Source: Squalus acanthias (lineage: Eukaryota). From it: DNA of 64,000 nt. The DNA lies in NCBI GenBank assembly GCA_030390025.1, contig CM059425.1, positions 260,958,001 through 261,022,000 on the forward strand, given 5' to 3'. A program made the translations under genes and the position numbers. The notes beneath the pieces are model-generated. The model was not told where the DNA came from, searched no databases, and saw only the letters and a program-made list of their open reading frames with translations. Positions 1 to 60,752 of the stretch are shown here, one piece after another. Each line of letters begins with the position of its first letter. Position 1 is the stretch's first letter.

Positions 1-16
1 TCAGTCCTGCTCCTTT
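1..16 (-). CDS. Copy A exon 5, terminal coding part (R)KEQD*
   Basis: Acceptor cttgttttgtccacag at 17-32. The phase-2 junction gives AGA AAG GAG CAG GAC TGA. Confidence 0.65.
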
Positions 17-3000
17 CTGTGGACAAAACAAGACCAATTAAAATGAGCCGTGTGAACTATAAAATAAGAGCACTTTCAGCACCTCCATCCACAACCAGCG
101 GCTGTTTAAATAGCATTCCCTGCGCATTTCAAAATAGATTTGATAGCCGATCTTAATGAATACTTTGCATGTGTTTTCACAAAAGAGAGGGGCGATGCAG
201 AAATTGCAATCAGGGAGGAGGAGTGTGAAATATCGGATGAAATAAACATAGTGAAAGAGGAAGTATTAAGGGGTTTAGCATCTTTGAAGGTGGATAAATC
301 CCCCGGCCCGGATGAAATGTATCCCAGACTGTTAAGAGAAGTAAGAGAGGAAATAGCAGAGGCTCTGACAATCATTTTCCAATCCTCTCTGGCTACAGGT
401 GTGGTGCCGGAGGACTGCTAATGTGATACCGTTGTTTAAAAAGGGAGAAAGGGATAGACCGAGTAATTACAGGCCAGTCAGCCTAACCTCGGTGGTGGGA
501 AAATTATTGGAAAAAATTCTGAGGGACAGGATAAATCTTCATTTAGAAAGACACAGATTAATCAGGGACATGAGGGAGATCATGGATTTGTTAAGGGAAG
601 GTCGTGTCTGACTAACATGATTGAATTTTTTGAGGAGGTAACAAGGAGGGTAGATGAGGGTAGTGCATTTGTTGTAGTCTATATGGATTTTAGCAAGGCT
701 TTTGATAAGGTTCCACATGGCAGCCTGGTCACAAAAGTAAAAACCCATGGGATCCAGGGCAAAGTGGCAAGTTGGATCCAAAATTGGCTCAGAGGCAGGA
801 AACAGAGGGTAATGGTCGAAGGGTGTTTTTGTGACTGGAAGGCTGTTTCCAGTGGGGTTCCGCAGGGATCAGTACTGGGACCTTTGCTTTTTGTGGTATA
901 TATCAATGATTTGGACTTGAATGTAGGAAGTATGATTAAGAAGTTTGCAGATGATACAAAAATTGGCCGTGTGGTTGATAATGAAGAAGAAAGCTGTAGA
1001 CTGCAGGAAGATATCAATGGACTGGTCAGGTGGGCAGAACAGTAGCAAATGGAATTCAATCCGGAGAAGTATGAGGTAATGCATTTGGGGAGGGCTAACA
1101 AGGAAAGGGAATACACTGTAAATGGTAGGGCACTGAGTAGTGTAGAGGAACAAAGGGACCTTGGACTGCATGTCCACAGATCCCTGAAGGTAGCAGGCCA
1201 AGTAGATAAGGTGGTTAAGAAGGCATACGGAATGCTTGCCTTTATTAGCCGAGGCATAGAATATAAGAGCAGGGAGGTTGGGCTTGAACTGTATAAAATA
1301 CTAGTTAGGCCGCAGATAGAATACTGCGTGCAGTTCTGGTCACCACATTACAGGAAGGATGTAATTGCACGCGAGAGGTTGCAGAGGAGATTTATGAAGA
1401 TGTTGCCTGGGCTGGGGAATTTTAGCTATGAGAAAAGATTGGATAGGTTGGGGTTGTTTTATTTGGAACAGAGGAGGCTGAGGGGAGACTTAATTGAGGT
1501 GTATAAAATTATGAGGGCCTAGATAGAGTGGATAGGAAGGACCTATTTCCTTTAGCAGAGGGGTCGATAACCAGGGGGCACAGATTTAAAGTAATTGGTA
1601 GGAGGATTAGAGGGGATTTGAGGAGAATTTTTTTCACCCAGAGTGTAGTGGGGTTCTGGAACTCACTGCCTGAAAGGGTGGTAGAGGCAGAAACTCTCAT
1701 CACATTTAAAAAGTACTTGGATATGCACTTGAAGTGCCGTAACCAACAAGGCTACGCACCAAGAGCTGGAAAGTGGGATTAGGCTGGATAGCTCTTTGTC
1801 GGCAGGCATGGACATGATGGGCCGAATGGCCTCCTTCTGTGCTGTAAATTTCTATGATTCTATGATGATCCCAGCTGGGGCTGCAGTAGGGGCTCTCCAG
1901 TTGGTCTAAGTGAAACTGGGATAGGGAGAGGAAACATTGCCCAGGGATCCTGCTCCTGCTTGTATCCAGCAACCACTGCTGGACGTGTACTGTGTGGTCA
2001 TTGGCTCGACTTGGATGGCTCAGTGTTTGAATCACCTGCCAACACACACTGTCCAAGGCTCACCCATGAATCGGGCTTCAGGCATTTAAAGGCAAGAGTC
2101 TCCCAGCAATATTACATACCTGGTTTTCTCCCTGAATAAAATGATGCACATCACGAAAAGGGCAAGGAGTTTCACTCCAAGTGGAATGCACAATATCGCA
2201 ATGGGGAAAGCCTCTGCAACTGAACAGAAAGTGAGAGAGATCAAATCGGAGACAAATAAAGGTGAGACACCAACAATGCAGCGACAATTAATCAAAGCCT
2301 GTAGACAAGTGTGAATCTTGACTGCAAGGCAGAAATATTGTGGTGATGGAGATGAGCTAGGCAAAGAGTATGGACTGTCAATGAAGAACGACAAATGGAG
2401 AGTACAAATAATATAGTATCTCACAGTGACGGGTTAATACTGTAGTATTTACGGTGACTAGGGTTAATACTGTAGTATATCACAATCACAGGGCTAAATA
2501 TTGTAATGCTCATAGTGAAATAAATAATTTCTGTAGTATTTAGCAAAATGGTTAAATACTGTGATGGATGAATACTGTCGTACTCGGTGTTGGGGTGAAT
2601 ACAAGAGTACTCACAGTGACAGAGGCAAATACAAGAGTACTCACAGTGACAGAGGCAAATACAAGAGTACTCACAGTGACAGAGGCAAATACAAGAGTAC
2701 TCACAGTGACAGAGGCAAATACAAGAGTACTCACAGTGACAGAGGCAAATACAAGAGTACTCACAGTGACAGAGGCAAATACAAGAGTACTCACAGTGAC
2801 AGAGGCAAATACAAGAGTACTCACAGTGACAGAGGCAAATACAAGAGTACTCACAGTGACAGAGGCAAATACAAGAGTACTCACAGTGACAGAGGCAAAT
2901 ACAAGAGTACTCACAGTGACAGAGGCAAATACAAGAGTACTCACAGTGACAGAGGCAAATACAAGAGTACTCACAGTGACAGAGGCAAATACAAGAGTAC

Positions 3001-6000
3001 TCACAGTGACAGAGGCAAATACAAGAGTACTCACAGTGACAGAGGCAAATACAAGAGTACTCACAGTGACAGAGGCAAATACAAGAGTACTCACAGTGAC
3101 AGAGGCAAATACAAGAGTACTCACAGTGACAGAGGCAAATACAAGAGTACTCACAGTGACAGAGGCAAATACAAGAGTACTCACAGTGACAGAGGCAAAT
3201 ACAAGAGTACTCACAGTGACAGAGGCAAATACAAGAGTACTCACAGTGACAGAGGCAAATACAAGAGTACTCACAGTGACAGAGGCAAATACAAGAGTAC
3301 TCACAGTGACAGAGGCAAATACAAGAGTACTCACAGTGACAGAGGCAAATACAAGAGTACTCACAGTGACAGAGGCAAATACAAGAGTACTCACAGTGAC
3401 AGAGGCAAATACAAGAGTACTCACAGTGACAGAGGCAAATACAAGAGTACTCACAGTGACAGAGGCAAATACAAGAGTACTCACAGTGACAGAGGCAAAT
3501 ACAAGAGTACTCACAGTGACAGAGGCAAATACAAGAGTACTCACAGTGACAGAGGCAAATACAAGAGTACTCACAGTGACAGAGGCAAATACAAGAGTAC
3601 TCACAGTGACAGAGGCAAATACAAGAGTACTCACAGTGACAGAGGCAAATACAAGAGTACTCACAGTGACAGAGGCAAATACAAGAGTACTCACAGTGAC
3701 AGAGGCAAATACAAGAGTACTCACAGTGACAGAGGCAAATACAAGAGTACTCACAGTGACAGAGGCAAATACAAGAGTACTCACAGTGACAGAGGCAAAT
3801 ACAAGAGTACTCACAGTGACAGAGGCAAATACAAGAGTACTCACAGTGACAGAGGCAAATACAAGAGTACTCACAGTGACAGAGGCAAATACAAGAGTAC
3901 TCACAGTGACAGAGGCAAATACAAGAGTACTCACAGTGACAGAGGCAAATACAAGAGTACTCACAGTGACAGAGGCAAATACAAGAGTACTCACAGTGAC
4001 AGAGGCAAATACAAGAGTACTCACAGTGACAGAGGCAAATACAAGAGTACTCACAGTGACAGAGGCAAATACAAGAGTACTCACAGTGACAGAGGCAAAT
4101 ACAAGAGTACTCACAGTGACAGAGGCAAATACAAGAGTACTCACAGTGACAGAGGCAAATACAAGAGTACTCACAGTGACAGAGGCAAATACAAGAGTAC
4201 TCACAGTGACAGAGGCAAATACAAGAGTACTCACAGTGACAGAGGCAAATACAAGAGTACTCACAGTGACAGAGGCAAATACTATGTTGATACATCCCTG
4301 GCCTCTTATTTACTGGGCAGGTGGCTGGTGCGCTGGGTGAGACCACATGTACCGACCCTACGACCGGTGGAAGGGGGACCTCACCGGTTATACTGGCCCT
4401 TATAAAGGGGGCCAAGAGGGGGAATTGTTCATCGGGTGGGGTGGGGGTTAGCTCCGGCATCTCACCCAGAACCAGCGCATTGGTCCTCTACGCAGTCTCC
4501 TTCGGCTGGAGGGCGCCTATGGTTTTACCCCATCGTGTCGCGGGCACCCGCCTGTCATATTTAAATGGAGGACCACCCACCGACGCTGCGCATTTCAATA
4601 GAGCCCAGGGGGATTTTAGGCCCCAGTGTCCCCAAAATGGGAGCGTTTGGAAGGAACTGATGGAATCGGTCAGTTAGGAAAAAGAAGTGCTTGCATTTAT
4701 ATAGCGCCTTTCACAACCTCGGGACATCACAAAGCGCTTTACAGCCAATGAAGTATCTTTTGAAGTGTAGTCAGCTGTGGCTCAGTGGGTAGCACACTCG
4801 CCTCTGAGTCATGAAGGTTGTGGGTTCAAGTCCCACTCCAGGGACCTGAGCACATAAAGCTAGGCTGACGCTCCAGTGCGGTACTGAGAGAGTGCTGCAC
4901 TGTCGGAGGTGCCGTCTTTCAGATGAGACCTTAAACCGAGGCCCCGTCTGCTCTCTCAGGTGGATGTAAAAGATCCCATGGCACTATTTTGAAGAAGAGC
5001 AGGGGAGCTCTCCCCAGTGTCCTGGCCAACATAACAAAAACAGATTATCTGGTCATTATCACATTGCTGTTTGTGGGAGCTTGCTGTGTGCAAATTGGCT
5101 GCCGCGTTTCCCACATTACAACAGTGACTGTACTTCATTGGCTGTAAAGCGCTTTGGGACGTCTGGTGGTCATGAAAGGTGCTATAGAAATGCAAGTCTT
5201 TCTTTTAGTCACTGTTTTGATGTAGGGCACCAATATGCGCACAGCAAGCTCCCACAAACACTAATGTGATAAATGAGCAGATAATCTCTTTTTTACCTTT
5301 TTTGAGGGATAAATGCTGGCCAGGACACCGGGGAGCACTCACTGCTCTTCAGAATAGTGCAGTGGGATCTTTTACATCCACCTGAGGGGGCAGATGGGGC
5401 TCCGTTTTAACGTCTCATCTGAAAAACGTCAGTACTGCACCGGGAATGCCAGCCTAGATTATAGTCAAGTGTCTGGAGTGAGATGTGACAACTCGACCTT
5501 TTGACTCAGAGGCGAGAGTGCTACCCACTGAGCCAGGCTGATGAGTGTTTTCTGTTACACCGCCGGCTCCTCACTGTACAACCTCGATACACTGGAGAAT
5601 GTGGGAATGGCTTCTTACCATGTATCACCTCCAGCCGTGTCTCATTCTGGATCAGATGTTGATAATCGTCCCATTTCTTGTACTCCACCAGACACAGGTA
5701 AGTGTGGTTGTCCTTCACGCTCAGCTGGTTTATCCTGGTTGAGGCGTTTCCCTCCTCTGGTTTCCCGACTAGCTCGTACCGATTTCCACCGTTTACAGTT
5801 GTCCAAGATCCGTTTGATTGGGCTGTAAATGTGACTACGTGTTGGTAGGGCTCCTTCCTCATCCATGTAACAGTGCTCAGGGCGGTGCGGTCGCTGGGCC
5901 GTGTGAACATACAGGGCAGTGTAACCGAAGCTCCCTCGGTCCCACTCACCACTGAGACACTTCCACTAGCAGCTGAGGAAAGGACAAACATCAGAATGAG

Positions 6001-9000
6001 TCAGTGTCTTGATGAGAACGTTTAATTTATTTTAGTTCAGAGCTCTCCCTGTGGCCTTCCTCAGAGCACAAGGCTGGTCAATGAGTGGCAATGGACTATT
6101 TGACTGTGGAGAGCATCACAGGCAGGCCCAATGTCCAAGAACACAGCTTCCAGCAGGAGTCACTGGAGCGTGATCAGGAGCAGGAACCCCGGCCAATATC
6201 CCCCCCCCCCCCCCTTCATAGCCCGGGGCTGCTGAAAGTTTATTGATCCGTGTGGCTCAGGACCGGACCAGGTGGAGCCTTTACCCATTGAGCTATCGGA
6301 GCAGCTCCAGCCCCTGAACATTGTTCCTCACCTCTCACACTCAGACTCGGAATCGTTGTCCACGGTGTTTGAAAACCGCCAATATTGAGCAGCACTCGAC
6401 ACCGATAATCACCGCTGTCCGCCGGGCTCAGCCGCTCCATCATTATCGAGATATCCTTGTTGCTGAGGTTCCCCACGAATCTGAATCGATTCCCGCCGTC
6501 CTGCTGTCTCACACTCTCACACAGCCCGGCCCGTGAATGGCCCTGACCAGAATATGTACAGTTAAAAATAACCGGGTGAAACCCCGAGTCACCTTTGATC
6601 CACATCACAGTGCCGGTGAGCGTGCGATCAGGGTTTGGGTGGGTGAAACTGCACGGCAAGACAGCGGACCCCCCTTCCTCAGCAGTCACTGCATCCGCGC
6701 CGCTCATTGTCCAACCATTACGAGAAAACTCTGTGGGGCGAGAGAGACAACATTAGAACAGCACGGGGGCAGACATCAGTGTTTCAAGAACACACTGCCT
6801 GACAATATACTGAGTCTGTGATATAGTGACAACAGATATAAGAGGGGGGATTTTTCGGGGGTCAGCGGGCGCGTTCGGTGCCGGGTCGAGTGGGGAATTT
6901 TTTTTTCTGACAGCGGGTCGGGACCCTGCTGTCAACCCGCTGCCACCCGCCTTTCCCAGATTTCGGGTCTGTCAGGGCTGCGGGGGAGGCAATTCAGGTC
7001 ATTATGATCTTGTTAACAGCCCATTAAGAAGTATTTTGAGCTCGGCTTTACATTTTACGAAGTCGCCCAGGGAGTCCATGCTGCTCGGGGTTCACGCCAG
7101 GTAAGCAGGTAGGGAGTTGTGTTACCATGATATGATCGCTTTACTTAACAGCACCAACAACAACACTAACCTTCTCCGCAATTAACTGATGCTGCACAGG
7201 ACAGAGGACATCAGCACCCGACCACATTGCTGCCCGGGAGGCCAGGGATGGCCTCACTATGGCCAGATTTACTTCACTTGACTCTGAACACCCTGGCTGC
7301 CACATGATGTGCCAGGTTGGCACCATCCCACACCAACACCATAAAGCATCCCTACAATGTCCCAAGCCATTCCTTTCACACTTATTACCATTGCGGGGGG
7401 TACCGTTATGTCTCATCATTCACTGCAACTCACTAAGCCACTTCCAAAGGTGGACAGAAATCTGTCCAAGAATGCAAAGTGTTGAAAATAAAGATTTCAA
7501 TGTTTGACAGCACATTAACAGAAACTTCACATGAACTTCACATTGGCTAAAACACCCAAGTGCCTACCCTTGTGTGTTGTTAGTTGGTATGATTGCATTA
7601 GGATGAGGGTGAGCGTGAGGGGTGCCTAGTGAGATGGGGAAGTGATAATGTAGATAGAGAGGGATGGGTGGGGGTGCAAGGTAAGTTGGTGTGAGTAAGG
7701 ATGTGCAGGAGCAGGGTAAGGAAGGCAGAGTGATGGGGATGTGATGAGTGGCACAGCAGGATGAGGTTGAGTGTGGCTTGGCAGTAACATTTCGTGATCT
7801 ACTGAGATCATTGAAAGGTTTGCGCCACTGCAGCCTGGTCCTCCTGACAACATCCCTGCTTGTGTCCTCCTGTGCAATGTGCAACCAGGCTGCATTGGTC
7901 TCCTGGGGAGGTGTCTTCTGCCCATGGGAAGGGAAGTTGACTTCCCTGCATGCTGTAACTCCCTCCATAAGCATATGGAGGGAGTCACGGGAGAGCCATG
8001 CTGCGGCCTTGCACCTCTGTGCAGTGCTTGTCAGTGTTGGCAGCATCTCAATGCTGCAGAACACTGACAGCGCAAATGTCAAAAGCAATTTGCGCATGGT
8101 CCCTTTAAGGAAACTGCCTGATGATGTGTCATCAAATGACATCATCAGACCCGCTTCCTTCAATTGGCCAGGAAATGTGCTGGGCGGGCTTAACAAGCCC
8201 AATCAGGGGGAAGTCATTCTACAGAGCGGGCTGGAGCCAGCAGCGAGGTCGGGACCCACCAGCGACCCTGGCCGCATCGGATCCGCCGAGGTAGGGCAAA
8301 TCGCGGCCAACATCACATGGTCAGATTGGGATGGTTTATACATGGATATCGGACACTGTGTAGTGAGTTACAGTCTGGAATCTAATCGAGGGGTTCAGAT
8401 GGTTTATATATAGAATAATGGATACCTGGGAGTGAGTTACAGTCTGGAATCTAATCGAGGGGATTGGGTGGTTTACTTATAGAATAATGTCTACCTGGGA
8501 GTGAGTTACAGTCTGGAATCTAATCGAGGGGTTCAGATGGTTTATTTATAGAATAATGGATACCTGGGAGTGAGTTACAGTCTGGAATCTAATCGAGGGG
8601 TTTGGGTGGTTTATGTATAGAATAATGGATACCTGGGAGTGAGTTACAGTCTGGAATCTAATCGAGGGGTTCGGGTGGTTTATTTATAGAATAATAGATA
8701 CCTGGGAGTGAGTTACAGTCTGGAATCTAATCAAGGGGTTCAGATGGTTTATTTATAGAATAATGGATACCTGGGAGTGAGTTACTGTCTGGAATCTAAT
8801 CGAGAGGTTTGGGTGGTTTATGTATAGAATAATGGATACCTGGGAGTGAGTTACAGTCTGGAATCTAATCGAGGGGTTCGGGTGCTTTATACACAGAACA
8901 TTGGAACAGGAGGAGGCCATTGAGCCCCTCGAGCCTGTTCCTCCATTCAATGAGATCATGGCTGATCCGTGACCTAACTCCATATACCCACCTTTGGCCC

Positions 9001-31950: not shown

Positions 31951-32907
31951 TTAGTTTAAAGCCCTCTCCACAGCCCTAGTTATTCGATTCGCCAGGACAC
32001 TAGTCCCAGCACTGACCAAGTGAAGTCCGTCCCAACGGAACAGCTCTCTCCTGCCCCAGTACTGGTGCCAGTGTCCCAAGAAGCAAAACCCATTTTTCCC
32101 ACACCAGTCTTTGAGCCACGCATTCAACTCCCTGATTTTATTTACCCTAGCCAAATTTGCTCGTGGCTCAGGTAGTAATCCAGAGATTATTACCCTCGAT
32201 GTTCTGCTTTTTAATTTGGCCCCTAGCTGCTCAAACTCCCTCAGCAGAACCTCTTTCCTTGTCCTATCTATGTCATTGGTACCAACATGGACCACGACAA
32301 CTGGATCCTCCCCCTCCCACTCCAAGTTTCTCTCCAGCCCAGAGGAGATGTCCTTAACCCTGGCACCGGGCAGGCAACACAGCCTTCGGGACTCTCGCTC
32401 TTGGCTGCAAAGAACCCTATCTATCCCCCTAATGATACTATCCCCTACCACTACAACATTTCTTTTTACTCCCCCCACTTGAATGGACCCCCCTACCACG
32501 GTGCTGTGGCCAGGTTGCTCATCCTCCCTGCAGTCCCCGCTCCTATCCACACAGGGAGTAAGAGCCTCGAACCTGTTGGACAAGAGCAAGGGCTGCGGCT
32601 CCTCCAACACTACCTCCTGGATCCCTGTACCTGCCTCACTCGTAGTCACACCTTCCTGTCCCTGACCACGGGCTACTTCTGAATTAGTTACTCTAATTGG
32701 TGTGACTACCTCCTGAAACACGGAGTCCAGGTAACTCTCCCCCTCCCTGATGTGTCGCAGTGTTTGAAGCTCGGACTCCAGCTCATCAACACGGAGCCGG
32801 AGTTCCTTGAGCAGCCAACACTTACTGCAAATGTGTTCACCGTGAACATCAATGGTGTCCACCAGCTCCCACATATTGCAGCAGTAACACATCACCTGCT
32901 CTCCCAT
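31951..32907 (-). CDS. CR1 ORF1p (zinc finger/coiled coil plus SGNH esterase-like domain), 318 aa
   Basis: CYCCNMWE...CSKC, GDSIIRG, HVGTND, WDGLHL motifs, uninterrupted. Confidence 0.93.
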   Translation of the reverse strand: MGEQVMCYCCNMWELVDTIDVHGEHICSKCWLLKELRLRVDELESELQTLRHIREGESYLDSVFQEVVTPIRVTNSEVARGQGQEGVTTSEAGTGIQEVVLEEPQPLLLSNRFEALTPCVDRSGDCREDEQPGHSTVVGGSIQVGGVKRNVVVVGDSIIRGIDRVLCSQERESRRLCCLPGARVKDISSGLERNLEWEGEDPVVVVHVGTNDIDRTRKEVLLREFEQLGAKLKSRTSRVIISGLLPEPRANLARVNKIRELNAWLKDWCGKNGFCFLGHWHQYWGRRELFRWDGLHLVSAGTSVLANRITRAVERALN

Positions 32908-33350: not shown

Positions 33351-34250
33351 CTCCAGTTTCTTGCCATTAAGATAATAAATTGCTCTAGGATTTTTCCTGC
33401 CAAAGTGCATCACCTCACACTTTCCAGTGTTGTATTCCATCTGCCAGATCTCTGCCCACTTACTTAGCCTGTCTATGTCCCCTTGCAGGTTTTTTATGTC
33501 CTCCTCACTCACTACTTTCCCTCCCATCTTTGTATCATCTGCAAATTTTGATATGTTACACTTGGTCCCTTCCTCCAAATCGTTAATATAGATTGTAAAG
33601 AGTTGGGGACCCAGCACTGACCCCTGTGGAACACCACTAGTTACTGATTGCCAGTCTGAGAATGAACCATTTATCCCAACTCTTTGCTTTCTGTTAGATA
33701 GCCAATCCTCTATCCATGCCAGAATATTACCCCCAATCCCGTGATTTTTTACCTTAAGCAATAATCTTTTGTGTGGCACCTTGTCAAATGCCTTTTGGAA
33801 GTCTAAATACACTACGTCCACTGGTTCCCCTTTATCCACTCTATATGTTACTTCCTCAAAGAACTCCAGCAAATTTGTCAAACATGACTTCCCCTTCGTA
33901 AAAACCATGCTGACTTTGTCCTATTAAATTATGATTATCCAAATGTCCTGTTACTGTTTCCTTAATAATGGACTCCAAAATTTTACCTACCACAGATGTT
34001 AGGCTAACCGGTCTATAGTTACCAGCCTTCTGTCTACTGCCCTTTTTAAATAAGGGTGTTACATTAGCAGTTTTCCAGTCTGCCGGGACCTTAGCGGAAT
34101 CCAGGGAGTTTTGAAAAATTATTACCAATGCATCTACAATCCCTACCGCCACTTCCTTCAAGACTCTAGGATGTAAGCCATCAGGTCCAGGTGATTTATC
34201 CGCCTTGAGTCCCATTATTTTACCGAGTACCACTTCCTTAGTGATTTTGA
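33351..34250 (-). mobile_element. Near-identical duplicate of the RT segment 29605..30503, fused to the 5' end of the intact CR1
   Basis: 900 vs 899 bp; I see one extra A (~33901) and one substitution. Confidence 0.92.
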
Positions 34251-38100: not shown

Positions 38101-38515
38101 AAGGAGTTAGATATATTTCTTAAGGCTAAGGGGATCAAGGGATCTGGGGAGAAAGCAGGGACAGGGTACTGAATTTGGATGATCAGCCATGATCGCATTG
38201 AATGGCGGAGCAGGCTCAAGGGGCCGAATGGCCTACTCCTGCTCCTATCTTCTATGTTTCTATGCTTTGGGGAGTCAGGAGGTGAGACACTCGCCGCAGA
38301 ATACCCAGCCTCTGACCTGGTCTTGTTGCCACAGTATTTATGTGGCTGGTCCAGTTAAGTTTCTGGTCAATGGTGACCCCCAGGATGTTGATAGTGGGCG
38401 ATTCGGTGATGGTAATGCCATTGAATGTCAAGGGGAGATGGTTAGACTTTCGCTCGTTGGAGATAGACATTGCCTGGCACTTCCGTGGCACGAATGTTAC
38501 CTGCCACTTATCAGT
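35193..38515 (-). mobile_element. 3' part of a CR1/L2-group LINE (35193-35720 and 38270-38515) split by a plus-strand CR1
   Basis: IYKAQVRSVMEYSPLAW and KWQVTFVPRKCQ motifs; A-rich 3' end at 35193. Confidence 0.85.
35722..38263 (+). mobile_element. 5'-truncated decayed CR1 LINE
   Basis: Partial endonuclease plus RT (518-aa open stretch), frameshifts, ttctatgtttctatg tail. Confidence 0.93.
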
Positions 38516-38865
38516 TCCCTGAGCAAAGCACCTGGAATAATTGGCATTTCCCAACTGTCGTACTCACAGTCACCTCTGTCCCATGGCCTCTCCCACTATT
38601 CACATCATAGATAAAGCCTGGGCATTTGTACAGAATTATATTGGGAATGATCCTACGCGGATTCCATTCGAAATGACAGTGTGATGCAGAGCCGTGCCGA
38701 ATAGCTGATTAACAGGAAGAATTTTGCACTGCGGTCCAGGATCACTCAGCGAAGGATCACTATAGCAAGTACAGCCTGAATCGCTGGATGAGATTCAGTG
38801 CTGGGAGAGCGGAACAGGTTTATATTGCGGTTTGTACATTGGGTTTCTCAGCCTCCTGGGATGGA

Positions 38866-38881
38866 TCAGTCCTGCTCCTTT
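38866..38881 (-). CDS. Copy B exon 5, terminal coding part, followed by a probable 3' UTR toward ~38520
   Basis: Identical to 1..16, with non-repetitive sequence downstream on the minus strand. Confidence 0.65.
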
Positions 38882-41800
38882 CTGTGGACAAAACAAGACC
38901 AATTAAAATGAGCCGTGTGAACTATAAAATAAGAGCACTTTCAGCACCTCCATCCACAACCAGCGGCTGTTTAAATAGCATTCCCTGCGCATTTCAAAAT
39001 AGATTTGATAGCCGATCTTAATGAATACTTTGCATGTGTTTTCACAAAAGAGAGGGGCGATGCAGAAATTGCAATCAGGGAGGAGGAGTGTGAAATATCG
39101 GATGAAATAAACATAGTGAAAGAGGAAGTATTAAGGGGTTTAGCATCTTTGAAGGTGGATAAATCCCCCGGCCCGGATGAAATGTATCCCAGACTGTTAA
39201 GAGAAGTAAGAGAGGAAATAGCAGAGGCTCTGACAATCATTTTCCAATCCTCTCTGGCTACAGGTGTGGTGCCGGAGGACTGCTAATGTGATACCGTTGT
39301 TTAAAAAGGGAGAAAGGGATAGACCGAGTAATTACAGGCCAGTCAGCCTAACCTCGGTGGTGGGAAAATTATTGGAAAAAATTCTGAGGGACAGGATAAA
39401 TCTTCATTTAGAAAGACACAGATTAATCAGGGACATGAGGGAGATCATGGATTTGTTAAGGGAAGGTCGTGTCTGACTAACATGATTGAATTTTTGAGGA
39501 GGTAACAAGGAGGGTAGATGAGGGTAGTGCATTTGTTGTAGTCTATATGGATTTTAGCAAGGCTTTTGATAAGGTTCCACATGGCAGCCTGGTCACAAAA
39601 GTAAAAACCCATGGGATCCAGGGCAAAGTGGCAAGTTGGATCCAAAATTGGCTCAGAGGCAGGAAACAGAGGGTAATGGTCGAAGGGTGTTTTTGTGACT
39701 GGAAGGCTGTTTCCAGTGGGGTTCCGCAGGGATCAGTACTGGGACCTTTGCTTTTTGTGGTATATATCAATGATTTGGACTTGAATGTAGGAAGTATGAT
39801 TAAGAAGTTTGCAGATGATACAAAAATTGGCCGTGTGGTTGATAATGAAGAAGAAAGCTGTAGACTGCAGGAAGATATCAATGGACTGGTCAGGTGGGCA
39901 GAACAGTAGCAAATGGAATTCAATCCGGAGAAGTATGAGGTAATGCATTTGGGGAGGGCTAACAAGGAAAGGGAATACACTGTAAATGGTAGGGCACTGA
40001 GTAGTGTAGAGGAACAAAGGGACCTTGGACTGCATGTCCACAGATCCCTGAAGGTAGCAGGCCAAGTAGATAAGGTGGTTAAGAAGGCATACGGAATGCT
40101 TGCCTTTATTAGCCGAGGCATAGAATATAAGAGCAGGGAGGTTGGGCTTGAACTGTATAAAATACTAGTTAGGCCGCAGATAGAATACTGCGTGCAGTTC
40201 TGGTCACCACATTACAGGAAGGATGTAATTGCACGCGAGAGGTTGCAGAGGAGATTTATGAAGATGTTGCCTGGGCTGGGGAATTTTAGCTATGAGAAAA
40301 GATTGGATAGGTTGGGGTTGTTTTATTTGGAACAGAGGAGGCTGAGGGGAGACTTAATTGAGGTGTATAAAATTATGAGGGGCCTAGATCGAGTGGATAG
40401 GAAGGACCTATTTCCCTTAGCAGAGGGGTCGATAACCAGGGGGCACAGATTTAAAGTAATTGGTAGGAGGATTAGAGGGGATTTGAGGAGAATTTTTTTC
40501 ACCCAGAGTGTAGTGGGGTTCTGGAACTCACTGCCTGAAAGGGTGGTAGAGGCAGAAACTCTCATCACATTTAAAAAGTACTTGGATATGCACTTGAAGT
40601 GCCGTAACCAACAAGGCTACGGACCAAGTGCTGGAAAGTGGGATTAGGCTGGATAGCTCTTTGTCGGCAGGCATGGACATGATGGGCCGAATGGCCTCCT
40701 TCTGTGCTGTAAATTTCTATGATTCTATGATGATCCCAGCTGGGGCTGCAGTAGGGGCTCTCCAGTTGGTCTAAGTGAAACTGGGATAGGGAGAGGAAAC
40801 ATTGCCCAGGGATCCTGCTCCTGCTTGTATCCAGCAACCACTGCTGGACGTGTACTGTGTGGTCATTGGCTCGACTCGGATGGCTCAGTGTTTGAATCAC
40901 CTGCCAACACACACTGTCCAAGGCTCACCCATGAATCGGGCTTCAGGCATTTAAAGGCAAGAGTCTCCCAGCAATATTACATACCTGGTTTTGTCCCTGA
41001 ATAAAATGATGCACATCACGAAAAGGGCAAGGAGTTTCACTCCAAGTGGAATGCACAATATCGCAATGGGGAAAGCCTCTGCAACTGAACAGAAAGTGAG
41101 AGAGATCAAATCGGAGACAAATAAAGGTGAGACACCAACAATGCAGCGACAATTAATCAAAGCCTGTAGACAAGTGTGAATCTTGACTGCAAGGCAGAAA
41201 TATTGTGGTGATGGAGATGAGCTAGGCAAAGAGTATGGACTGTCAATGAAGAACGACAAATGGAGAGTACAAATAATATAGTATCTCACAGTGACGGGTT
41301 AATACTGTAGTATTTACGGTGACTAGGGTTAATACTGTAGTATATCACAATCACAGGGCTAAATATTGTAATGCTCATAGTGAAATAAATAATTTCTGTA
41401 GTATTTAGCAAAATGGTTAAATACTGTGATGGATGAATACTGTCGTACTCAGTGTTGGGGTGAATACAAGAGTACTCACAGTGACAGAGGCAAATACAAG
41501 AGTACTCACAGTGACAGAGGCAAATACAAGAGTACTCACAGTGACAGAGGCAAATACAAGAGTACTCACAGTGACAGAGGCAAATACAAGAGTACTCACA
41601 GTGACAGAGGCAAATACAAGAGTACTCACAGTGACAGAGGCAAATACAAGAGTACTCACAGTGACAGAGGCAAATACTATGTTGATACATCCCTGGCCTC
41701 TTATTTACTGGGCAGGTGGCTGGTGCGCTGGGTGAGACCACATGTACCGACCCTACGACCGGTGGAAGGGGGACCTCACCGGTTATACTGGCCCTTATAA

Positions 41801-44800
41801 AGGGGGCCAAGAGGGGGAATTGTTCATCGGGTGGGGTGGGGGTTAGCTCCGGCATCTCACCCAGAACCAGCGCATTGGTCCTCTACGCAGTCTCCTTCGG
41901 CTGGAGGGCGCCCATGGTTTTACCCCATCGTGTCGCGGGCACCCGCCTGTCATGTTTAAATGGAGGACCACCCACCGACGCTGCGCATTTCAATAGAGCC
42001 CAGGGGGATTTTAGGCCCCAGTGTCCCCAAAATGGGAGCGTTTGGAAGGAACTGATGGAATCGGTCAGTTAGGAAAAAGAAGTGCTTGCATTTATATAGC
42101 GGCTTTCACAACCTCGGGACATCACAAAGCGCTTTACAGCCAATGAAGTATCTTTTGAAGTGTAGTCAGCCGTGGCTCAGTGGGTAGCACACTCGCCTCT
42201 GAGTCATGAAGGTTGTGGGTTCAAGTCCCACTCCAGGGACTTGAGCACATAAAGCTAGGCTGACGCTCCAGTGTGGTACTGAGAGAGTGCTGCACTGTCG
42301 GAGGTGCCGTCATTCAGGTGAGACCTTAAACCGAGGCCCTGTCTGCTCTCTCAGGTGGATGTAAAGGATCCCATGGCCACTATTTCAAAGAAGAGCAGGG
42401 GAGTTTTCCCTGGTGTCCTGGCTAACATAACAAAAACAGATTATCTGGTCATTATCACATTGCTGTTTGTGGGAGCTTGCTGTGCGCAAATTGGCTGCCG
42501 CGTTTCCCACATTACAACAGTGACTGTACTTCATTGACTGTAAAGCACTTTGGGACGTCTGGTGGTCATGAAAGGTGCTATAGAAATGCAAGTCTTTCTT
42601 TTAGTCACTGTTTTGATGTAGGGCACCAATTTGCGCACAGCAAGCTCCCACAAACACTAATGTGATAAATGAGCAGATAATCTCTTTTTTACTTTTTTTT
42701 TGAGGGATAAATGCTGGCCAGGACACCGGGGAGCAGTCACTGCTCTTCAGAATAGTGCAGTGGGATCTTTTACATCCACCTGAGGGGGCAGATGGGGCCC
42801 CGTTTTAACGTCTCATCTGAAAAACGTCAGTACTGCACCGGGAATGCCAGCCTAGATTATAGTCAAGTGTCTGGAGTGAGATTTGACAACTCGACCTTTT
42901 GACTCAGAGGCGAGAGTGCTACCCACTGAGCCAGGCTGATGAGTGTTTTCTGTTACACCGCCGGCTCCTCACTGTACAACCTCGATACACTGGAGAATGT
43001 GGGAATGGCTTCTTACCATGTATCACCTCCAGCCGTGTCTCATTCTGGATCAGATGTTGATAATTGTACAATTTCTTGGACTCCACCAGACACAGGTAAG
43101 TGTGGCTGTCCTTCACGCTCAGCTGGTTTATCCTGGTTGAGGCGTTTCCCTCCTCTGGTTTCCCGACTAGCTCGTACCGATTTCCACCGTTTACAGTTGT
43201 CCAAGATCCGTTTGATTGGGCTGTAAATGTGACTACGTGTTGGTAGGGCTCCTTCCTCATCCATGTAACAGTGCTCAGGGCGGTGTTGTCGCTGGGCCGT
43301 GTGAACATACAGGGCAGTGTAACCGAAGCTCCCTCGGTCCCACTCACCACTGAGCCACTTCCACTAGCAGCTGAGGAAAGGACAAACATCAGAATGAGTC
43401 AGTGTCTTGATGAGAACGTTTAATTTATTTTAGTTCAGAGCTCTCCCTGTGGCCTTCCTCAGAGCACAAGGCTGGTCAATGAGTGGCAATGGACTATTTG
43501 ACTGTGGAGAGCATCACAGGCAGGCCCAATGTCCAAGAACACAGCTTCCAGCAGGAGTCACTGGAGCGTGATCAGGAGCAGGAACCCCGGCCAATATCCC
43601 CCCCCCCCCCCCCCCGCCTTCATAGCCCGGGGCTGCTGAAAGTTTATTGATCCGTGTGGCTCAGGACCGGACCAGGTGGAGCCTTTACCCATTGAGCTAT
43701 CGGAGCAGCTCCAGCCCCTGAACATTGTTCCTCACCTCTCACACTCAGACTCGGAATCGTTGTCCACGGTGTTTGAAAACTGCCAATATTGAGCTCCACC
43801 CGACACCGATAATCACCGCTGTCCGCCGGGCTCAGCCGCTCCATCATTATCGAGGCATCCTTGTTGCTGAGGTTCCCCACGAATCTGAATCGATTCCCGC
43901 CGTCCTGCTGTATCACATTCTCACACAGCTCGGCCCGTGAATGGTCCAGACCAGAATATGTACAGTTAAAAATAACCCGGTGTAACCCCGAGTCACCTTT
44001 GATCCACATCACATTGCCGGTGAGCGTGCGATCAGGGTTTGGGTGGGTGAAACTGCACGGCAAGACAGCGGACCCCCCTTCCTCAGCAGTCACTGCATCC
44101 GCGCCGCTCATTGTCCAACCATTGTGATAAACCTCTGTGGGGAGAGAGAGAGACAACATTAGAACAGCACGGGGGCAGACATCAGTGTTTCAAAAACACA
44201 CTGCCTGACAATATACTGAGTCTGTGATATAGTGACAACAGATATAAGAGGGGGGATTTTTCGGGGGTCAGCGGGCGCGTTCGGTGCCGGGTCGAGTGGG
44301 GAAATTTTTTTTCTGACAGCGGGTCGGGACCCTGCTGTCAACCCGCTGCCACCCGCCTTTCCCAGATTTCGGGTCTGTCAGGGCTGCGGGGGAGGCAATT
44401 CAGGTCATTATGATCTTGTTAACAGCCCATTAAGAAGTATTTTGAGCTCGGCTTTACATTTTACGAAGTCGCCCAGGGAGTCCATGCTGCTCGGGGTTCA
44501 CGCCAGGTAAGCAGGTAGGGAGTTGTGTTACCATGATATGATCGCTTTACTTAACAGCACCAACAACAACACTAACCTTCTCCGCAATTAACTGATGCTG
44601 CACAGGACAGAGGACATCAGCACCCGAGCACATTGCTGCCCGGGAGGCCAGGGATGGCCTCACTATGGCCAGATTTACTTCACTTGACTCTGAACACCCT
44701 GGCTGCCACATGATGTGCCAGGTTGGCACCATCCCACACCAACACCATAAAGCATCCCTACAATGTCCCAAGCCATTCCTTTCACACTTATTACCATTGC

Positions 44801-47800
44801 GGGGGGTACCGTTATGTCTCATCATTCACTGCAACTCACTAAGCCACTTCCAAAGGTGGACAGAAATCTGTCCAAGAATGCAAAGTGTTGAAAATAAAGA
44901 TTTCAATGTTTGACAGCACATTAACAGAAACTTCACATGAACTTCACATTGGCTAAAACACCCAAGTGCCTACCCTTGTGTGTTGTTAGTTGGTATGATT
45001 GCACTAGGATGAGGGTGAGTGTGAGGGGTGCCTAGTGAGATGGGGAAGTGATAATGTAGATAGAGAGGGATGGGTGGGGGTGCAAGGTAAGTTGGTGTGA
45101 GTAAGGATGTGCAGGAGTAGGGTAAGGAAGGCAGAGTGATGGGGATGTGATGAGTGGCACAGCAGGATGAGGTTGAGTGTGGCTTGGCAGTAACATTTCG
45201 TGATCTACTGAGATCATTGAAAGGTTTGCGCCACTGCAGCCTGGTCCTCCTGACAACATCCCTGCTTGTGTCCTCCTGGGGAGGTGTCTTCTGCCCATGG
45301 GAAGGGAAGTTGACTTCCCTGCATGCTGTAACTCCCTCCATAAGCATATGGAGGGAGTCACGGGAGAGCCATGCTGCGGCCTTGCACCTCTGTGCAGTGC
45401 TTGTCAGTGTTTGCAGCATCTCAATGCTGTAGAACACTGACAGCGCAAATGTCAAAAGCAATTTGCGCATGGTCCCTTTAAGGAAACTGCCTGATGATGT
45501 GTCATCAAATGACATCATCAGACCCGCTTCCTTCAATTGGCCAGGAAATGTGCTGGGCGGGCTTAACAAGCCCAATCAGGGGGAAGTCATTCTACAGAGC
45601 GGGCTGGAGCCAGCAGCGAGGTCGGGACCCACCAGCGACCCTGGCCGCATCGGATCCGCCGAGGTAGGGCAAATCGCGGCCAACATCACATGGTCAGATT
45701 GGGATGGTTTATACATGGATATCGGACACTGTGTAGTGAGTTACAGTCTGGAATCTAATCGAGGGGTTCAGATGGTTTATATATAGAATAATGGATACCT
45801 GGGAGTGAGTTACAGTCTGGAATCTAATCGAGGGGTTTGGGTGGTTTACTTATAGAATAATGTCTACCTGGGAGTGATTTACAGTCTGGAATCTAATCGA
45901 GGGGTTCGGGTGGTTTATTTATAGAATAATGGATACCTGGGAGTGAGTTACAGTCTGGAATCTAATCGATGGGTTCGGGTGGTTTATTTATAGAATAATG
46001 GATACCTGGGAGTGAGTTACAGTCTGGAATCTAATCGAGGGGTTTGGGTGGTTTATTTATAGAATAATGGATACCTGGGAGTGATTTACAGTCTGGAATC
46101 TAATCAAGGGGTTCGGGTGGTTTATATATAGAATAATGGATACCTGGGAGTGAGTTACAGTCTGGAATCTAATCAAGGGGTTCGGGTGGTTTATATATAG
46201 AATAATGGATACCTGGGAGTGAGTTACAGTCTGGAATCTAATCGAGGGGTTTGGGTGGTTTATGTATAGAATAATGGATACCTGGGAGTGAGTTACAGTC
46301 TGGAATCTAATCGAGGGGTTCGGGTGGTTTATTTATAGAATAATAGATACCTGGGAGTGAGTTACAGTCTGGAATCTAATCAAGGGGTTCAGATGGTTTA
46401 TTTATAGAATAATGGATACCTGGGAGTGAGTTACTGTCTGGAATCTAATCGAGAGGTTTGGGTGGTTTATGTATAGAATAATGGATACCTGGGAGTGAGT
46501 TACAGTCTGGAATCTAATCGAGGGGTTCGGGTGCTTTATACACAGAACATTGGAACAGGAGGAGGCCATTGAGCCCCTCGAGCCTGTTCCTCCATTCAAT
46601 GAGATCATGGCTGATCCGTGACCTAACTCCATATACCCACCTTTGGCCCATATCCCTTAATACCTTTAGTTAACAAAAGCTATCAATCATAAGAACATAA
46701 GAAATAGGAGCAGGAGTCGGCTATTTGGCCCCTCGAGCCTGCTCAGCCATTCAATAAGATCATGGCTGATCTTCTACCTCATCTCCACTTTCTTGCACTA
46801 TCCCCAAATTCCTTGATTCCCTTAATATCCAAAAATCTATCGATCTCTGTCTTGAATATACTCAATGCCAGGAGCAGAACCAGCGGACCTGAGCGGAACT
46901 GGAGTGGCAGTGGGAGCAGAATAAAGAGCACGGTGAAAGGAGGCTTGAGAGCAGAGCCAGCGGGGAGGAGCAGCGAGGCTCCGATTCAATAACAAAAAAA
47001 TCAAAGTGTGAGTAACAGGTAAGCAGGTAGGTGATTGGTGGTGAGTATTTCTTTTCTCTCAGGACTGAGGGCTAAGTTACAGTAAAGACCTATAGCATAT
47101 AACTACATTTATAACTAACTCAACTTATTTTAATAAATTTAATAAATTAAACAAGGTTATTACCTGGTTTACCTAGATTAAAAACTATAAATACACAATT
47201 CATTGATATTGATGTAATTAATTAAATAAAATACAATAGAGATGGCAGGGCAGGCGATGTGTTGCAGCTGTAACATGTGGGAGCTGGTGGACACCAGTGT
47301 GATCCAGGGCGACCACATCTGCAGTAAGTGTCTGCAGCTCGAGGAACTTCGGCTCAGAGTTGATGGGCTGGAGTCTGAGCTGCAGACATTGCGATACATC
47401 AGGGAGGGAGAAAGTTACCTGGACACTTTGTTCCAGGAGGCAGTCACACCCCTTAGGTTAAATACTTCAGATTTGGTCCGTGGTCAGAGACAGGAGGGTG
47501 TGACTGCAAGTGAGGCAGGTATGGGAATCCAGAAGGTAGCATTGGAGGAGCCTCAGCCCTTGCACTTGTCCAACAGGTACGAGGTACTTCCTCCCTGTGT
47601 GGACGAGAGCAGGGACTGCAGGGAGGATGAGAAAACTGACCACAGCACCGTGGTACAGGGGGCCATTCAAGTTGGGGGAGTAAAAAGTAATGTAGTCTTG
47701 ATAGGGGACAGTATAGTTAGGGGGATAGATACTGTTCTCTGCAGCCGAGAGTGTGAGTCCGAAGGCTGTGTTGCCTGCCCGGTGCCAGGGTTAAGGATAT

Positions 47801-59800: not shown

Positions 59801-60752
59801 CCCAGACAGCTGCCTACACCAGCTCTTGGCTCCCTCTGCCACATCCAGTATCTCCACCACCCTTGATTTCCCCAGCCAGACAATGGCTAACCACGCTACA
59901 GGACAGGTTGAAAAATTAATCAAAGAGGCTAATGGCATATTCGCCTTCATATTGAGAGGGCTAGAATATAAAAGGGAAGCAGCTTTGCTACAGCTATACA
60001 AAGCTCTGGTTAGACCGCATAATGTGTACAGTTCTGGGCACCACACATAAGAGAGGACATATTGGCCTTGGAAAGAGTGCAGTGCAGTTTCACCAGAATG
60101 TTACCAGGTCTCCAAGGGTTAGATTATGAGGAGAGATTACATAATCTAGGCTTGTAGTCCCTTGGATGTAGAAGGTTAAAGGGTGATTTGATTGAGGTTT
60201 TTAAGACATTGAAAGGAATTGATAGGGTAGATAGAGAGATATTTTTTCACTGGTGGGGGAGTCTAGGACAAGGGGACATAAACTCACATTCAGAGCCAGG
60301 CGTTTCACTAGAGAAGTTAGGAAACACTTCTTCACGCAAAGTGTGGAACTCTCTGCTGTAAAAAGCTCAAGAAATAATTTTAAATCTGAGATCGATAGAT
60401 TTTTGCTAGCCAAGGGTATTAAGGGATATGGAGCCAAGGCGATAAGATACAGATCACCATGATCTCAATGGATGGCAGAACAGGCTCGAGGGGCTGAATG
60501 GCCTCCCCCTGTTCCCATGTTTCTTGTGTCTCGCTAGAAACCAGACGCTCACTCTACCCCTCCCTGTTTCTCTGACTCTGACCGTCGCCGCTCTGGACTT
60601 TCACCCACTCACAACCCTGCGGTGAAATGATAAAAAGGAGCAGTTTGTGCAACAAAATGAATTTGAACAGTTGTTATTGGAAAGCACCTACTGTAACCCC
60701 GCACCGAGACCGACAGCAGGACTGCGGAAAGCCAAACGTAGAGAGAATTCAT
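38866..60752 (-). CDS. Siglec-15-like activating Ig-superfamily receptor, copy B (309 aa); join of 60692..60752, 43736..44134, 43017..43370, 40985..41084, 38866..38881
   Basis: Same exon sizes (61, 399, 354, 100, 16), splice sites and open frame as copy A. 22 amino-acid differences by manual count, 21 of them in the two Ig domains. Confidence 0.85.
39005..40730 (+). mobile_element. Truncated CR1/L3 LINE, copy B
   Basis: Duplicate of 140..1865. Confidence 0.95.
40985..41084 (-). CDS. Copy B exon 4, transmembrane segment with Lys
   Basis: 100 nt. VAEAFPIAILCIPLGVKLLALFVMCIILFRDKTR; one substitution (E to D) versus copy A. Confidence 0.88.
41463..41677. repeat. Same 30-bp minisatellite, ~7 units
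   Basis: Same unit; 49 units (1470 bp) fewer than in copy A. Confidence 0.99.
42078..42938. mobile_element. Nested SINE pair, copy B
   Basis: Duplicate of 4683..5540. Confidence 0.85.
43017..43370 (-). CDS. Copy B exon 3, second V-set domain (V2)
   Basis: 354 nt with AG/GT boundaries. VTLPCMFTRP...DSHTYLCLVESKKLYNY...TRLEVIH. Confidence 0.92.
43736..44134 (-). CDS. Copy B exon 2, Siglec-15-like V-set domain (V1)
   Basis: 399 nt with AG/GT boundaries. (K)VYHNGWTM...LPCSFTHP...FNC...LCE...DSGDYRCRVEL...SLSVR. Confidence 0.92.
45735..46546. repeat. 69-bp minisatellite, 12 units
   Basis: Same unit, 276 bp (4 units) longer than in copy A. Confidence 0.97.
49359..50799 (+). mobile_element. Solo LTR, copy B
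   Basis: Duplicate of 11712..13157 with AACT flanks. Confidence 0.85.
58092..59361 (+). mobile_element. Solo LTR, copy B
   Basis: Duplicate of 20383..21652 with CACG flanks. Confidence 0.85.
60692..60752 (-). CDS. Copy B exon 1, signal peptide
   Basis: Identical to 22982..23042. Confidence 0.75.

Follow-up and report, generated by a model that had tools for sequence, protein, structure and literature searches.

The closest solved relative of the receptors described here is Siglec-15. In the accessible text of PMC7226832, fish regularly have only four Siglecs (Siglec-1, CD22, MAG, and Siglec-15), and Siglec-15 is treated as a conserved activating Siglec. The Lys in its transmembrane (TM) segment binds DAP10/12, and a K-to-A change abolishes binding (accessible parts of PMC7226832 and PMC10264397). 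The latter source, in the same partial form, describes the C95-C104 pair as a unique feature of Siglec-15 and R143 as the essential salt-bridge residue to sialic acid, and it also lists Y87, V150, R153, Y154, and E155 as ligand contacts. We analyzed a 64,000-base stretch of Squalus acanthias DNA (contig CM059425.1, positions 260,958,001 to 261,022,000), called the window throughout, which carries two tandem genes, A and B. Each encodes a Siglec-15-like V-set domain (V1), a second V-set domain (V2), a TM segment with a Lys, and a short tail. In our judgment, these genes are probably activating receptor paralogues of a Siglec-15-derived V-V lineage of sharks and rays.

In each of the two repeat units in the window, the minus strand carries an intact gene of five exons, in the order leader, V1, V2, TM(Lys), and short tail. 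This order had been proposed in an initial annotation of the stretch and was borne out: the motifs YRCRV (6407-6393 and 43811-43797) and LGVKLL (2181-2164 and 41046-41029) occur twice on the minus strand, self-BLAST recovers both copies, and all exon boundaries in both are canonical (AG/.../GT). The coding exons total 930 nt, or 310 codons including the stop, and the predicted product is a type I membrane protein of ~307 to 309 residues with a signal peptide, V1, V2, a TM segment, and a tail of ~9 residues. Exons were searched singly, and the horn-shark protein P0170 served as a full-length stand-in for the window genes. The V1 exons (6332-6730 in gene A and 43736-44134 in gene B) are 399 nt long and the V2 exons (5619-5972 and 43017-43370) 354 nt long, all in phase 1-1. 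All four match the Pfam V-set family (E 1.7e-11 to 9.3e-17; for gene A, 1.7e-11 for V1 and 6.4e-16 for V2). V1 carries YRCRV and an extra Cys pair; V2 reads YLCLVEY, with Leu at the position of V1's Arg, and lacks the extra pair. The TM exons (2120-2219 and 40985-41084; 100 nt, phase 1-2; …AFPIAILCIPLGVKLLALFVMCIILFREKT… in gene A) encode AFPIAILCIPLGVKLLALFVMCIILF, and the P0170 model contains one predicted helix with the Lys near its middle. The last coding exon completes an Arg codon and adds KEQD and a stop (1-16 in gene A, read from the sequence, with the stop codon ending at base 1; 38881-38866 in gene B). The TM Lys and short tail named in the initial annotation are thus read directly in the sequence (LGVKLL; REKTRKEQD in A, RDKTRKEQD in B), and the tail has no Tyr and no signalling motif.

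V1 is Siglec-15-like, and Siglec-15 is its best solved relative by both sequence and fold. A phmmer comparison of V1 with the PDB placed Siglec-15 (7zoz) first at E 9.5e-15, followed by TIM-3 (6.4e-5) and JAML (1e-4) and, further down, sialoadhesin (6.5e-4) and CD33 (8.9e-4); a profile of the family likewise had 7zoz at the top (1.2e-24, 89 bits within one domain). In the HMMER alignment to 7zoz, V1 aligns with human Siglec-15 W44, C64-C142, C95-C104, and R143. The Trp of GWTMS aligns with W44, the Cys residues of IFNC and GLCE with C95 and C104, and the Arg of YRCRV, the Siglec F-strand Arg, takes the R143 position in both copies. The Y87 position is Gly/Phe, and the alignment ends before the G strand. 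The Cys pairs, the Arg, and the Siglec-15 likeness pointed out in the initial annotation are therefore all found. In per-domain phmmer comparisons, V1 scored a median of 54 bits with the V domain of bony-vertebrate Siglec-15; the medians were 47 for domain 1 of the V-V-C2 genes discussed below, 41 for its own V2, and 18 for other V-set families. The best matches from species other than cartilaginous fish included proteins named Siglec-15 from gar (4.4e-26), lungfish (6.0e-24), and mammals (5.8e-12), and a newt protein that NCBI names Siglec-12 (6.6e-25). An AlphaFold (AF2) model of the window V1 (predicted local distance difference test score, 80.8) had 7zoz_A as its top Foldseek match (E 4.5e-10, TM-score 0.80/0.84, root-mean-square deviation [rmsd] 2.6 Å, 30% identity), followed by the sodium-channel beta-2 subunit and the N-terminal domain of sialoadhesin.

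It is highly unlikely, in our estimate, that these receptors belong to some other V-set group (pIgR/CD300/TREM, JAML, PILR, or TIM-like) and resemble Siglec-15 by convergence or only superficially. NCBI does name relatives "junctional adhesion molecule-like," "polymeric immunoglobulin receptor-like," or "hepatitis A virus cellular receptor 1-like," and the deep part of our tree lacks resolution. The best Foldseek matches of the two-domain P0170 model were generic two-V proteins (JAML, single-chain variable fragments [scFvs], and pIgR). That ranking merely favors proteins with two V domains and is uninformative on family, which is why V1 was folded alone. When domains are compared singly, Siglec-15 leads all solved relatives by about ten orders of magnitude, and it is also first by fold; the score against the pIgR profile is the sum of two domain matches; and the Siglec-15-specific Cys pair, the Arg, and the LGxK motif of the TM segment are all shared. 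A grouping of V1 with Siglec-15 is favored by the similarity scores, while the tree returns a polytomy, and we do not claim nesting.

Public sequencing data bear on the exon structure. Thirteen runs were identified, none of which is recorded as RNA and nine of which were guessed to be RNA; these nine contain 0.06 to 0.20 of the sampled words (0.14 to 0.20 in eight of them), with exons making up about a quarter of the stretch sampled. Contigs from four runs were aligned to 38400-44300. A contig of 949 letters from run X1 aligns on the minus strand in three pieces: letters 1-176 correspond to 43736-43911, 177-530 to 43017-43370, and 625-943 to 38563-38881. The contig thus ends the V1 exon of gene B exactly at 43736, covers the V2 exon exactly, and joins the two at the predicted junction; the end of its V2 piece and the start of its last-exon piece also coincide with the predicted boundaries. 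The 94 unlisted letters between V2 and the last exon equal the length of the TM exon when counted from the second of two tandem acceptors (41078-40985), and the V2/TM and TM/tail junctions fit the model if the TM exon starts at 41078. These acceptors lie 6 nt apart (TTCAG/TTGCAG/AGG; 2213-2219 in gene A, where the alternative start is 2213, and 41078-41084 in gene B), and the 94-nt version drops two residues (Val-Ala) ahead of EAFPIA.... A contig of equal depth covers position 41040. In a 535-letter contig from run X2, the last-exon piece likewise begins at 38881 and extends to 38485, so that the last exon of gene B spans 38485-38881, with at least ~380 nt of 3′ untranslated region (UTR) after the stop. 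Neither AATAAA nor ATTAAA occurs within 38300-38865.

Because the X1 contig skips three introns at canonical sites, we infer that it derives from spliced RNA. Contigs from runs X10 and X13 span exon-intron borders at ~95% identity and are DNA of relatives. Over its 176 V1 letters, the X1 contig has 8 mismatches to copy B, most of them at sites that A and B share, and the X2 contig over V2 has the copy A letter at four of the five A/B differences in its range. A gene of the window type is therefore expressed, which may or may not be one of these two copies. One X1 contig extends 385 letters past 44123, and the leader-V1 junction lies outside contig coverage.

The leader exons were placed by tblastn homology to P0170, with inspection of the boundary in both genes. 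Their coding parts lie at 22982-23042 in gene A (MNSLYVWLSAVLLSVSVRGY and one further base, the first of a split codon, followed by the donor GTAGGT) and at 60692-60752 in gene B, with ATG codons at 23042 and 60752, 16.3 and 16.6 kb upstream of V1; in gene A, 5′ UTR lies upstream of 23042. P0170 residues 11-50 (to the Tyr of GYK) match 23102-22983 and 60812-60693. The donor proposed in the initial annotation (G/GTTACA) is weak, and a donor 6 nt downstream (GGTTACA/GTAGGT) is likewise in frame. The latter gives ...SVSVRGY-K-FSRNGW, compared with ...VRGYKVSANGW in P0170 and ...VQGYKLSVSGW in P0166. We placed the leader exons at 23042-22982 and 60752-60692 because the downstream donor fits both the length and the GYK of relatives, and by this comparison the resulting leader-to-V1 junction would be the likelier gene model. 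Among the junctions claimed initially, V1/V2 is thus matched exactly and V2/TM and TM/tail fit the X1 contig, the leader-V1 junction has homology behind it, and the leader donor has moved by 6 nt.

These contigs also bear on whether the window gene is the ordinary single SIGLEC15 orthologue, with a C2 exon or a closer leader exon overlooked. V1 and the TM exon do resemble Siglec-15. We nevertheless regard this explanation as extremely improbable. A tblastn search of the window with the C2-TM parts of P0111 and P0029 returned no C2-like match and only weak matches to the known TM exons (E 0.14), and the X1 contig passes from V2 to the TM exon with nothing between them, its V2 and last exon being separated by only 94 letters. 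Separate V-V-C2-TM genes exist in the chimaera, whale shark, sevengill shark, and devil ray, and the window gene is present at least twice in tandem. The absence of a C2 exon from the window genes, part of the initial annotation, therefore holds. A tblastn search of the window for an ITIM-tail exon (ITIM, immunoreceptor tyrosine-based inhibitory motif) was also negative, and on that ground we class both window genes as the activating type.

The second V domain was initially interpreted as a replacement for C2. The comparisons do not support that view. Against the PDB, the best match of V2 is again the Siglec-15 V domain (E 3.6e-8), but its per-domain median phmmer scores were 57 bits against domain 2 of V-V-C2 genes, 39 against bony-vertebrate Siglec-15 V domains, and 35 against the V1 domains of its own family. 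By Pfam scans and by their sequences, V-V-C2-TM proteins exist as a class in cartilaginous fish: P0022 (Callorhinchus), P0036 (Mobula), and P0111 (Rhincodon) have a TM Lys and P0029 (Heptranchias) has an ITIM tail. NCBI names these genes Siglec-15, Siglec-12, or uncharacterized. Their C2 domain carries an ...AEGEPP... stretch shared with mammalian Siglec-15, and their TM segment, as in P0111 and P0036, reads MLCLIPLIKFLL.

An IQ-TREE analysis was run on 71 domain rows and 131 columns, chosen from 563 domain stretches in 228 of 235 proteins; it contained no named CD33-related, CD300, TREM, or pIgR rows, and its "low" outgroups are unnamed. Family V1 domains formed a clade (99/99) on a long branch and family V2 domains another (100/99). 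A 93/90 branch set V2 and domain 2 of the V-V-C2 genes, along with a single long-branch outgroup row, apart from the remaining rows. Forcing V1 and V2 into one clade cost 12.3 log-likelihood units and was rejected (approximately unbiased [AU] test, p 0.023); this constraint was named after a quick tree had been seen, and the idea itself predates the tree. Since both the V2 scores and the tree favor V-V-C2 domain 2, the second V would be older than the window-gene family, and loss of the C2 exon would be its simplest history. The direction of that change, from a V-V-C2-TM(Lys) ancestor, is deduced from these sequence comparisons.

Other vertebrates also carry multiple V domains of this type. 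The lamprey proteins P0034, P0035, P0048, and P0073, some of which NCBI names "Siglec-12" or "JAML-like," have two or three Siglec-15-like V domains and group in the tree with a sawfish protein named PILR-alpha-like; their existence suggests that the domain type may predate jawed vertebrates. P0020 (lungfish) and P0018 (gar), both named Siglec-15, each have two near-identical Arg-bearing V domains, and both lungfish domains pair together in the tree. Duplication of the V domain thus seems to have been recurrent in the Siglec-15 lineage, as judged from these predicted proteins.

To place the window genes among their relatives, V1 was scanned with HMMER against 1.84 billion representative proteins. 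The scan gave 280 matches at E <= 1e-3 and 15 at E <= 1e-30, and the top matches, among those looked up, were shark, ray, and chimaera proteins. With the sevengill-shark protein P0004 as the query, 77 of 466 candidates matched at E <= 1e-10, all of them from elasmobranchs (~24 species), and in Hemiscyllium ocellatum the relatives carry at least 10 locus names. With close matches confined to sharks, rays, and the chimaera, the suggestion of a multigene offshoot in cartilaginous fish stands. The horn-shark protein P0170, which NCBI names Siglec-15, has the window architecture, including ...PIAILCIPLGVKLLAL...RDKSRKEQD, and is 68% identical to copy A in V1, 79% in V2, and 81% in the TM segment.

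The initial annotation had presented the receptors as activating. They are not a stand-alone activating novelty, as emerged when tails and Arg classes were scored in 91 family proteins (23 from the V1 scan and 68 from the P0004 search) by a crude pattern match, which, with isoforms and close paralogues included, serves as a lead only. By this count, tails with an ITIM or an immunoreceptor tyrosine-based switch motif (ITSM) occur in 28, a TM Lys in 27, and an uncharged TM segment with no ITIM found in 10, while the other 26 lack a TM segment (soluble or partial). The motif LCIPLG[VL]K is kept in 27 of the 91, namely, the TM-Lys forms, across sharks and rays. Horn-shark P0170, an activating form, is 83 to 84% identical to the inhibitory forms P0168 and P0169, and, at the level of predicted proteins, such closely similar activating and inhibitory forms are a paired-receptor signature. 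Among scorable relatives, 23 of 25 ITIM forms and 12 of 24 TM-Lys forms retain the Arg that follows the F-strand Cys. This pattern would fit inhibitory members guarding recognition of self sialic acid and activating members drifting or adapting.

A second reading frame bears on the soluble forms. The last exon is open in that frame over 38809-38881 and encodes RSRTDPSQEAEKPNVQTAI plus a stop, again without Tyr; the gene A equivalent falls just outside the window start. Three other sharks have predicted isoforms whose C termini match the RSRTDPSQEAEKPNVQTAI frame. Of these, P0166 and P0004 end in the second-frame tail without the TM exon, and P0167 has the TM segment followed by that tail. These predicted proteins suggest a conserved soluble isoform made by skipping of the TM exon and a long-tail isoform made by use of an acceptor 4 nt further in.

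Self-BLAST showed that 1-26295 and 38866-64000 form one direct repeat of five collinear blocks with 97.5 to 99.7% identity. The window holds ~1.7 units of a ~38-kb tandem duplication, and both of its ends cut through the repeat: the copy A unit (1-26295, minus strand) is truncated at the window start, and the copy B unit (38866-64000, minus strand) runs past the window end. The window therefore appears to contain two adjacent paralogues of an array that continues outside it. Two tandem repeats differ in length between the units. Within the V2-TM intron lies a minisatellite of 30-bp units, with 56.2 copies in gene A (2598-4282) and 7.2 copies in gene B (41463-41677) and 100% matches in both (Tandem Repeats Finder), and because of this difference the intron measures 3399 nt in A and 1932 nt in B. 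A 69-bp repeat in the first intron, upstream of V1, has 7.7 copies in A (8362-8890) and 11.7 in B (45735-46539) by the same program.

Such high identity could mean that assembly created the duplication, from two haplotypes or by mis-joining a repeat of one gene, and that the A/B differences are allelic. The array of 56 identical 30-bp units is the kind of sequence that assemblers mishandle, and its uniformity points to either a very recent expansion or an assembly problem. We hold an artefact of the whole duplication to be very improbable all the same. The window has no gaps (no N), the 1.19% noncoding divergence is spread across 23.6 kb at 0 to 3.6% per kb, and the units differ in the copy numbers of both the minisatellite and the 69-bp repeat. 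In addition, relatives in other species occupy many loci, as in H. ocellatum, and additional variants, found in neither copy, appear in the transcript contigs.

Divergence between the copies is higher in the exons. Copies A and B differ at 27 of 924 aligned exonic bases (2.9%) and at 281 of 23,647 nonexonic bases (1.19%; Fisher p 5e-5), the latter counted without the 30-bp array. The 18 nucleotide differences in V1 comprise 16 nonsynonymous and 2 synonymous changes (Nei-Gojobori pN 0.053, pS 0.022); by the same method, V2 has 8 and 0 and the TM exon 1 and 0, for totals of 25 and 2 against a site-count expectation of 77% nonsynonymous (binomial p 0.033). The V1-V2 intron has no A/B mismatches. 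Many of the changes are in predicted loops. Mapped onto predicted strands, V1 is altered mostly at its N terminus and over the segment that begins at the C strand and extends beyond the second extra Cys; further V1 changes occur two residues after the Arg (L/E) and close to the F-G turn. In V2, the altered sites are near the B-C turn and the F-G turn. The CC′C″FG sheet is the ligand face of Siglec-15 in the accessible text of PMC10264397. The pattern is compatible with diversifying selection and with tracts converted from other paralogues, and 27 changes are too few to separate the two.

A clustering of changes on the ligand face is also what pathogen-driven selection would produce if these were real Siglec-15-derived activating receptors that had lost lectin function, with protein or microbial ligands and the Arg as a leftover. 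The Arg count above points the same way, the residue being replaced in 12 of 24 scorable TM-Lys relatives and kept in 23 of 25 scorable ITIM forms, and the other human ligand-contact residues are not clearly conserved. In the accessible part of PMC7226832, moreover, Siglec-15 cloned from zebrafish showed poor binding to the glycans tested. Against this, both window copies retain the Arg, the Trp, and both disulfides, and the tally of Arg residues was made by crude pattern matching over proteins that are not independent (isoforms and close paralogues). We consider loss of lectin function unlikely, but it is the alternative to which we give the most weight. Because V1 retains the Arg, the Trp, and both disulfides, sialic acid binding by V1 is plausible on sequence grounds, although not assured.

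In the mechanism that we favor, a Siglec-15-like ancestor of the V-V-C2-TM(Lys) type would have lost its C2 exon and then undergone tandem duplication, after which diversifying selection or patchy gene conversion would have driven the ligand-facing loops apart. A sialylated or pathogen-derived ligand would be bound by V1, possibly with V2 taking part. The receptor could not signal alone and would use an adaptor bearing an ITAM (immunoreceptor tyrosine-based activation motif) or a YxxM motif (DAP12, DAP10, or FcR-gamma type), held by a Lys-Asp contact within the membrane. The window genes would then represent the activating arm of a paired family of activating, inhibitory, and soluble receptors. 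The TM Lys is argued to be functional because LCIPLG[VL]K is strictly conserved across sharks and rays, and the window TM segment also resembles those of the V-V-C2 proteins P0111 and P0036 and of mammalian Siglec-15 (the motif of P0049 is similar as well). Adaptor pairing, sialic acid binding, and the activating role are predicted from these features.

Several observations weigh against this reading. V1 shows no clear match to the human ligand contacts beyond the Arg and Trp (Y87 and, on the G strand, V150 to E155), and with 12 of 24 scorable TM-Lys relatives lacking the Arg, lectin function is no family constant. The Siglec-15 orthologues in the input alignment of the V1 model may pull its fold toward Siglec-15, and the tree places V1, V-V-C2 domain 1, bony-vertebrate Siglec-15, and some unnamed V-set groups in one polytomy. 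The sequencing runs are merely guessed to be RNA, and their contigs are identical to neither copy. The nonsynonymous excess comes from only 27 differences and could be caused by gene conversion from other paralogues. Finally, no adaptor gene was found for this genome in a word search for DAP12/DAP10/TYROBP, no sequence search having been made, and the literature search, which left subscription papers largely outside its reach, yielded nothing on DAP12 in cartilaginous fish.

The remainder of each unit is debris of long interspersed nuclear elements (LINEs), with reverse transcriptase/endonuclease domains in 7 of 10 long open reading frames (ORFs) by Pfam. A seemingly intact LINE lies between the two gene copies (28960-32907, minus strand); by Pfam it has a 995-amino-acid ORF with endonuclease and reverse transcriptase domains and, just upstream, an eighth matching ORF, a 318-amino-acid ORF1 with a GDSL-lipase/esterase-like domain. 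A 900-bp piece is duplicated at 29605-30503 and 33351-34250 (99.8% identity by self-BLAST). No gene besides the two receptor genes and the LINE material was detected in the window.

As to whether these receptors are undescribed, a point that the initial annotation raised as a possibility, the answer is divided. The V-V-TM(Lys) architecture is already predicted in public databases, because the NCBI gene model P0170 matches it. For cartilaginous fish, we found no published account of a multigene or paired family derived from Siglec-15, in a search that left subscription papers and supplements largely outside. The accessible text of the fish Siglec paper PMC7226832 mentions sharks zero times, and that of the whale shark genome paper PMC8455134 mentions Siglecs once, in a list. 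New here are the Siglec-15 ancestry, the C2-less V-V arrangement, and the spread of the family over sharks and rays; tandem arrays of paired immunoglobulin superfamily (IgSF) receptors, adaptor-coupled and ITIM-bearing, are themselves well known.

The picture that results is of a cartilaginous-fish Siglec-15 lineage with C2 lost, tandem multiplication, inhibitory and soluble partners, and the fastest change at the ligand face. It is conceivable, and we put it forward tentatively, that sharks and rays have their own fast-evolving sialic acid surveillance from the Siglec-15 lineage, independent of CD33-related Siglecs, with dozens of V-V genes per genome and with activating, inhibitory, and soluble outputs, the soluble and long-tail forms coming from the two-frame last exon. 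Inhibitory members would keep the Arg for recognition of self, and activating members would diversify to counter pathogens by which this recognition is mimicked or exploited. Should both the lectin and the adaptor function prove true, paired, fast-evolving Siglec-type receptors would have had an independent origin at the base of jawed vertebrates, and it would become testable whether the pairing of self-sialic-acid recognition with activating decoys recurs. Two facts temper this significance: multigene paired IgSF receptor families are common in vertebrates, and the gene models are already in NCBI, where they are automatic and inconsistently named.

Compared with known systems, the window genes are nearest to human and mouse Siglec-15 (7ZOZ). 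They share with it a V-set with a B-F disulfide, an extra C′-C″ disulfide, an A-strand Trp, and an F-strand Arg, as well as a TM Lys in an LGxK-type motif and the absence of an ITIM. Unlike Siglec-15, they lack a C2-set domain and have a second, Arg-less V-set beside the membrane. Their tail is 9 residues long, in place of the longer Siglec-15 tail with its Y-E-N motif. They are tandemly multiplied and fast-evolving where Siglec-15 is a conserved single gene, and their relatives include ITIM-bearing and soluble forms. The absence of a C2-set after the V domain (by Pfam, tblastn, and the X1 contig) also separates them from the Siglec (I-type lectin) family at large. With the V-V-C2-TM genes they share the two-V order, the Arg of domain 1 in some (CRVEL in P0022 and CRVDF in P0029, compared with CLVEL in P0036), a domain 2 without the Arg in three of four (the exception being P0111, CRVHV), a TM exon of the form …LC(L)IPL.K.LL…, and a domain 2 that is closest to the window V2. 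The V-V-C2-TM genes differ in keeping a C2/I-set with an AEGEPP-type motif, and the V1 of the window family forms a separate clade on a long branch (99/99).

JAML also has two tandem V-set domains followed by a TM segment and was the best Foldseek match of the two-domain P0170 model, but the match has 17% identity with an rmsd of >10 Å over both domains, V1 matches it only at E 1e-4, and the Siglec-15 hallmarks are missing. Like adaptor-coupled (DAP12-type) activating receptors, the window genes encode a TM core with a basic residue and a short tail that has no signalling motif. Fish NITR are adaptor-coupled multigene V-set receptors. No close sequence relationship links the window genes to PILR-beta, SIRP-beta, TREM, NITR, or NILT, solved non-Siglec V-sets matching V1 at E 6e-5 or worse. 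As far as the accessible texts go, PILR-beta, SIRP-beta, TREM, and fish NILT resemble them in having a V-set, a basic TM residue, a short tail, ITIM counterparts, and tandem arrays (PMC2211832, PMC12975943, PMC4788293, PMC3022915). The primate paired Siglecs (Siglec-5/14 and Siglec-11/16) are CD33-related, combine V with C2, and arose independently in mammals outside the Siglec-15 lineage. In the accessible parts of PMC4042635 and PMC5701461, they are similar to the shark and ray family in placing near-identical ectodomains on ITIM forms or on short-tail forms with a charged TM segment and in having ligand domains that are fast-changing or gene-converted, and an analogous function would be expected.

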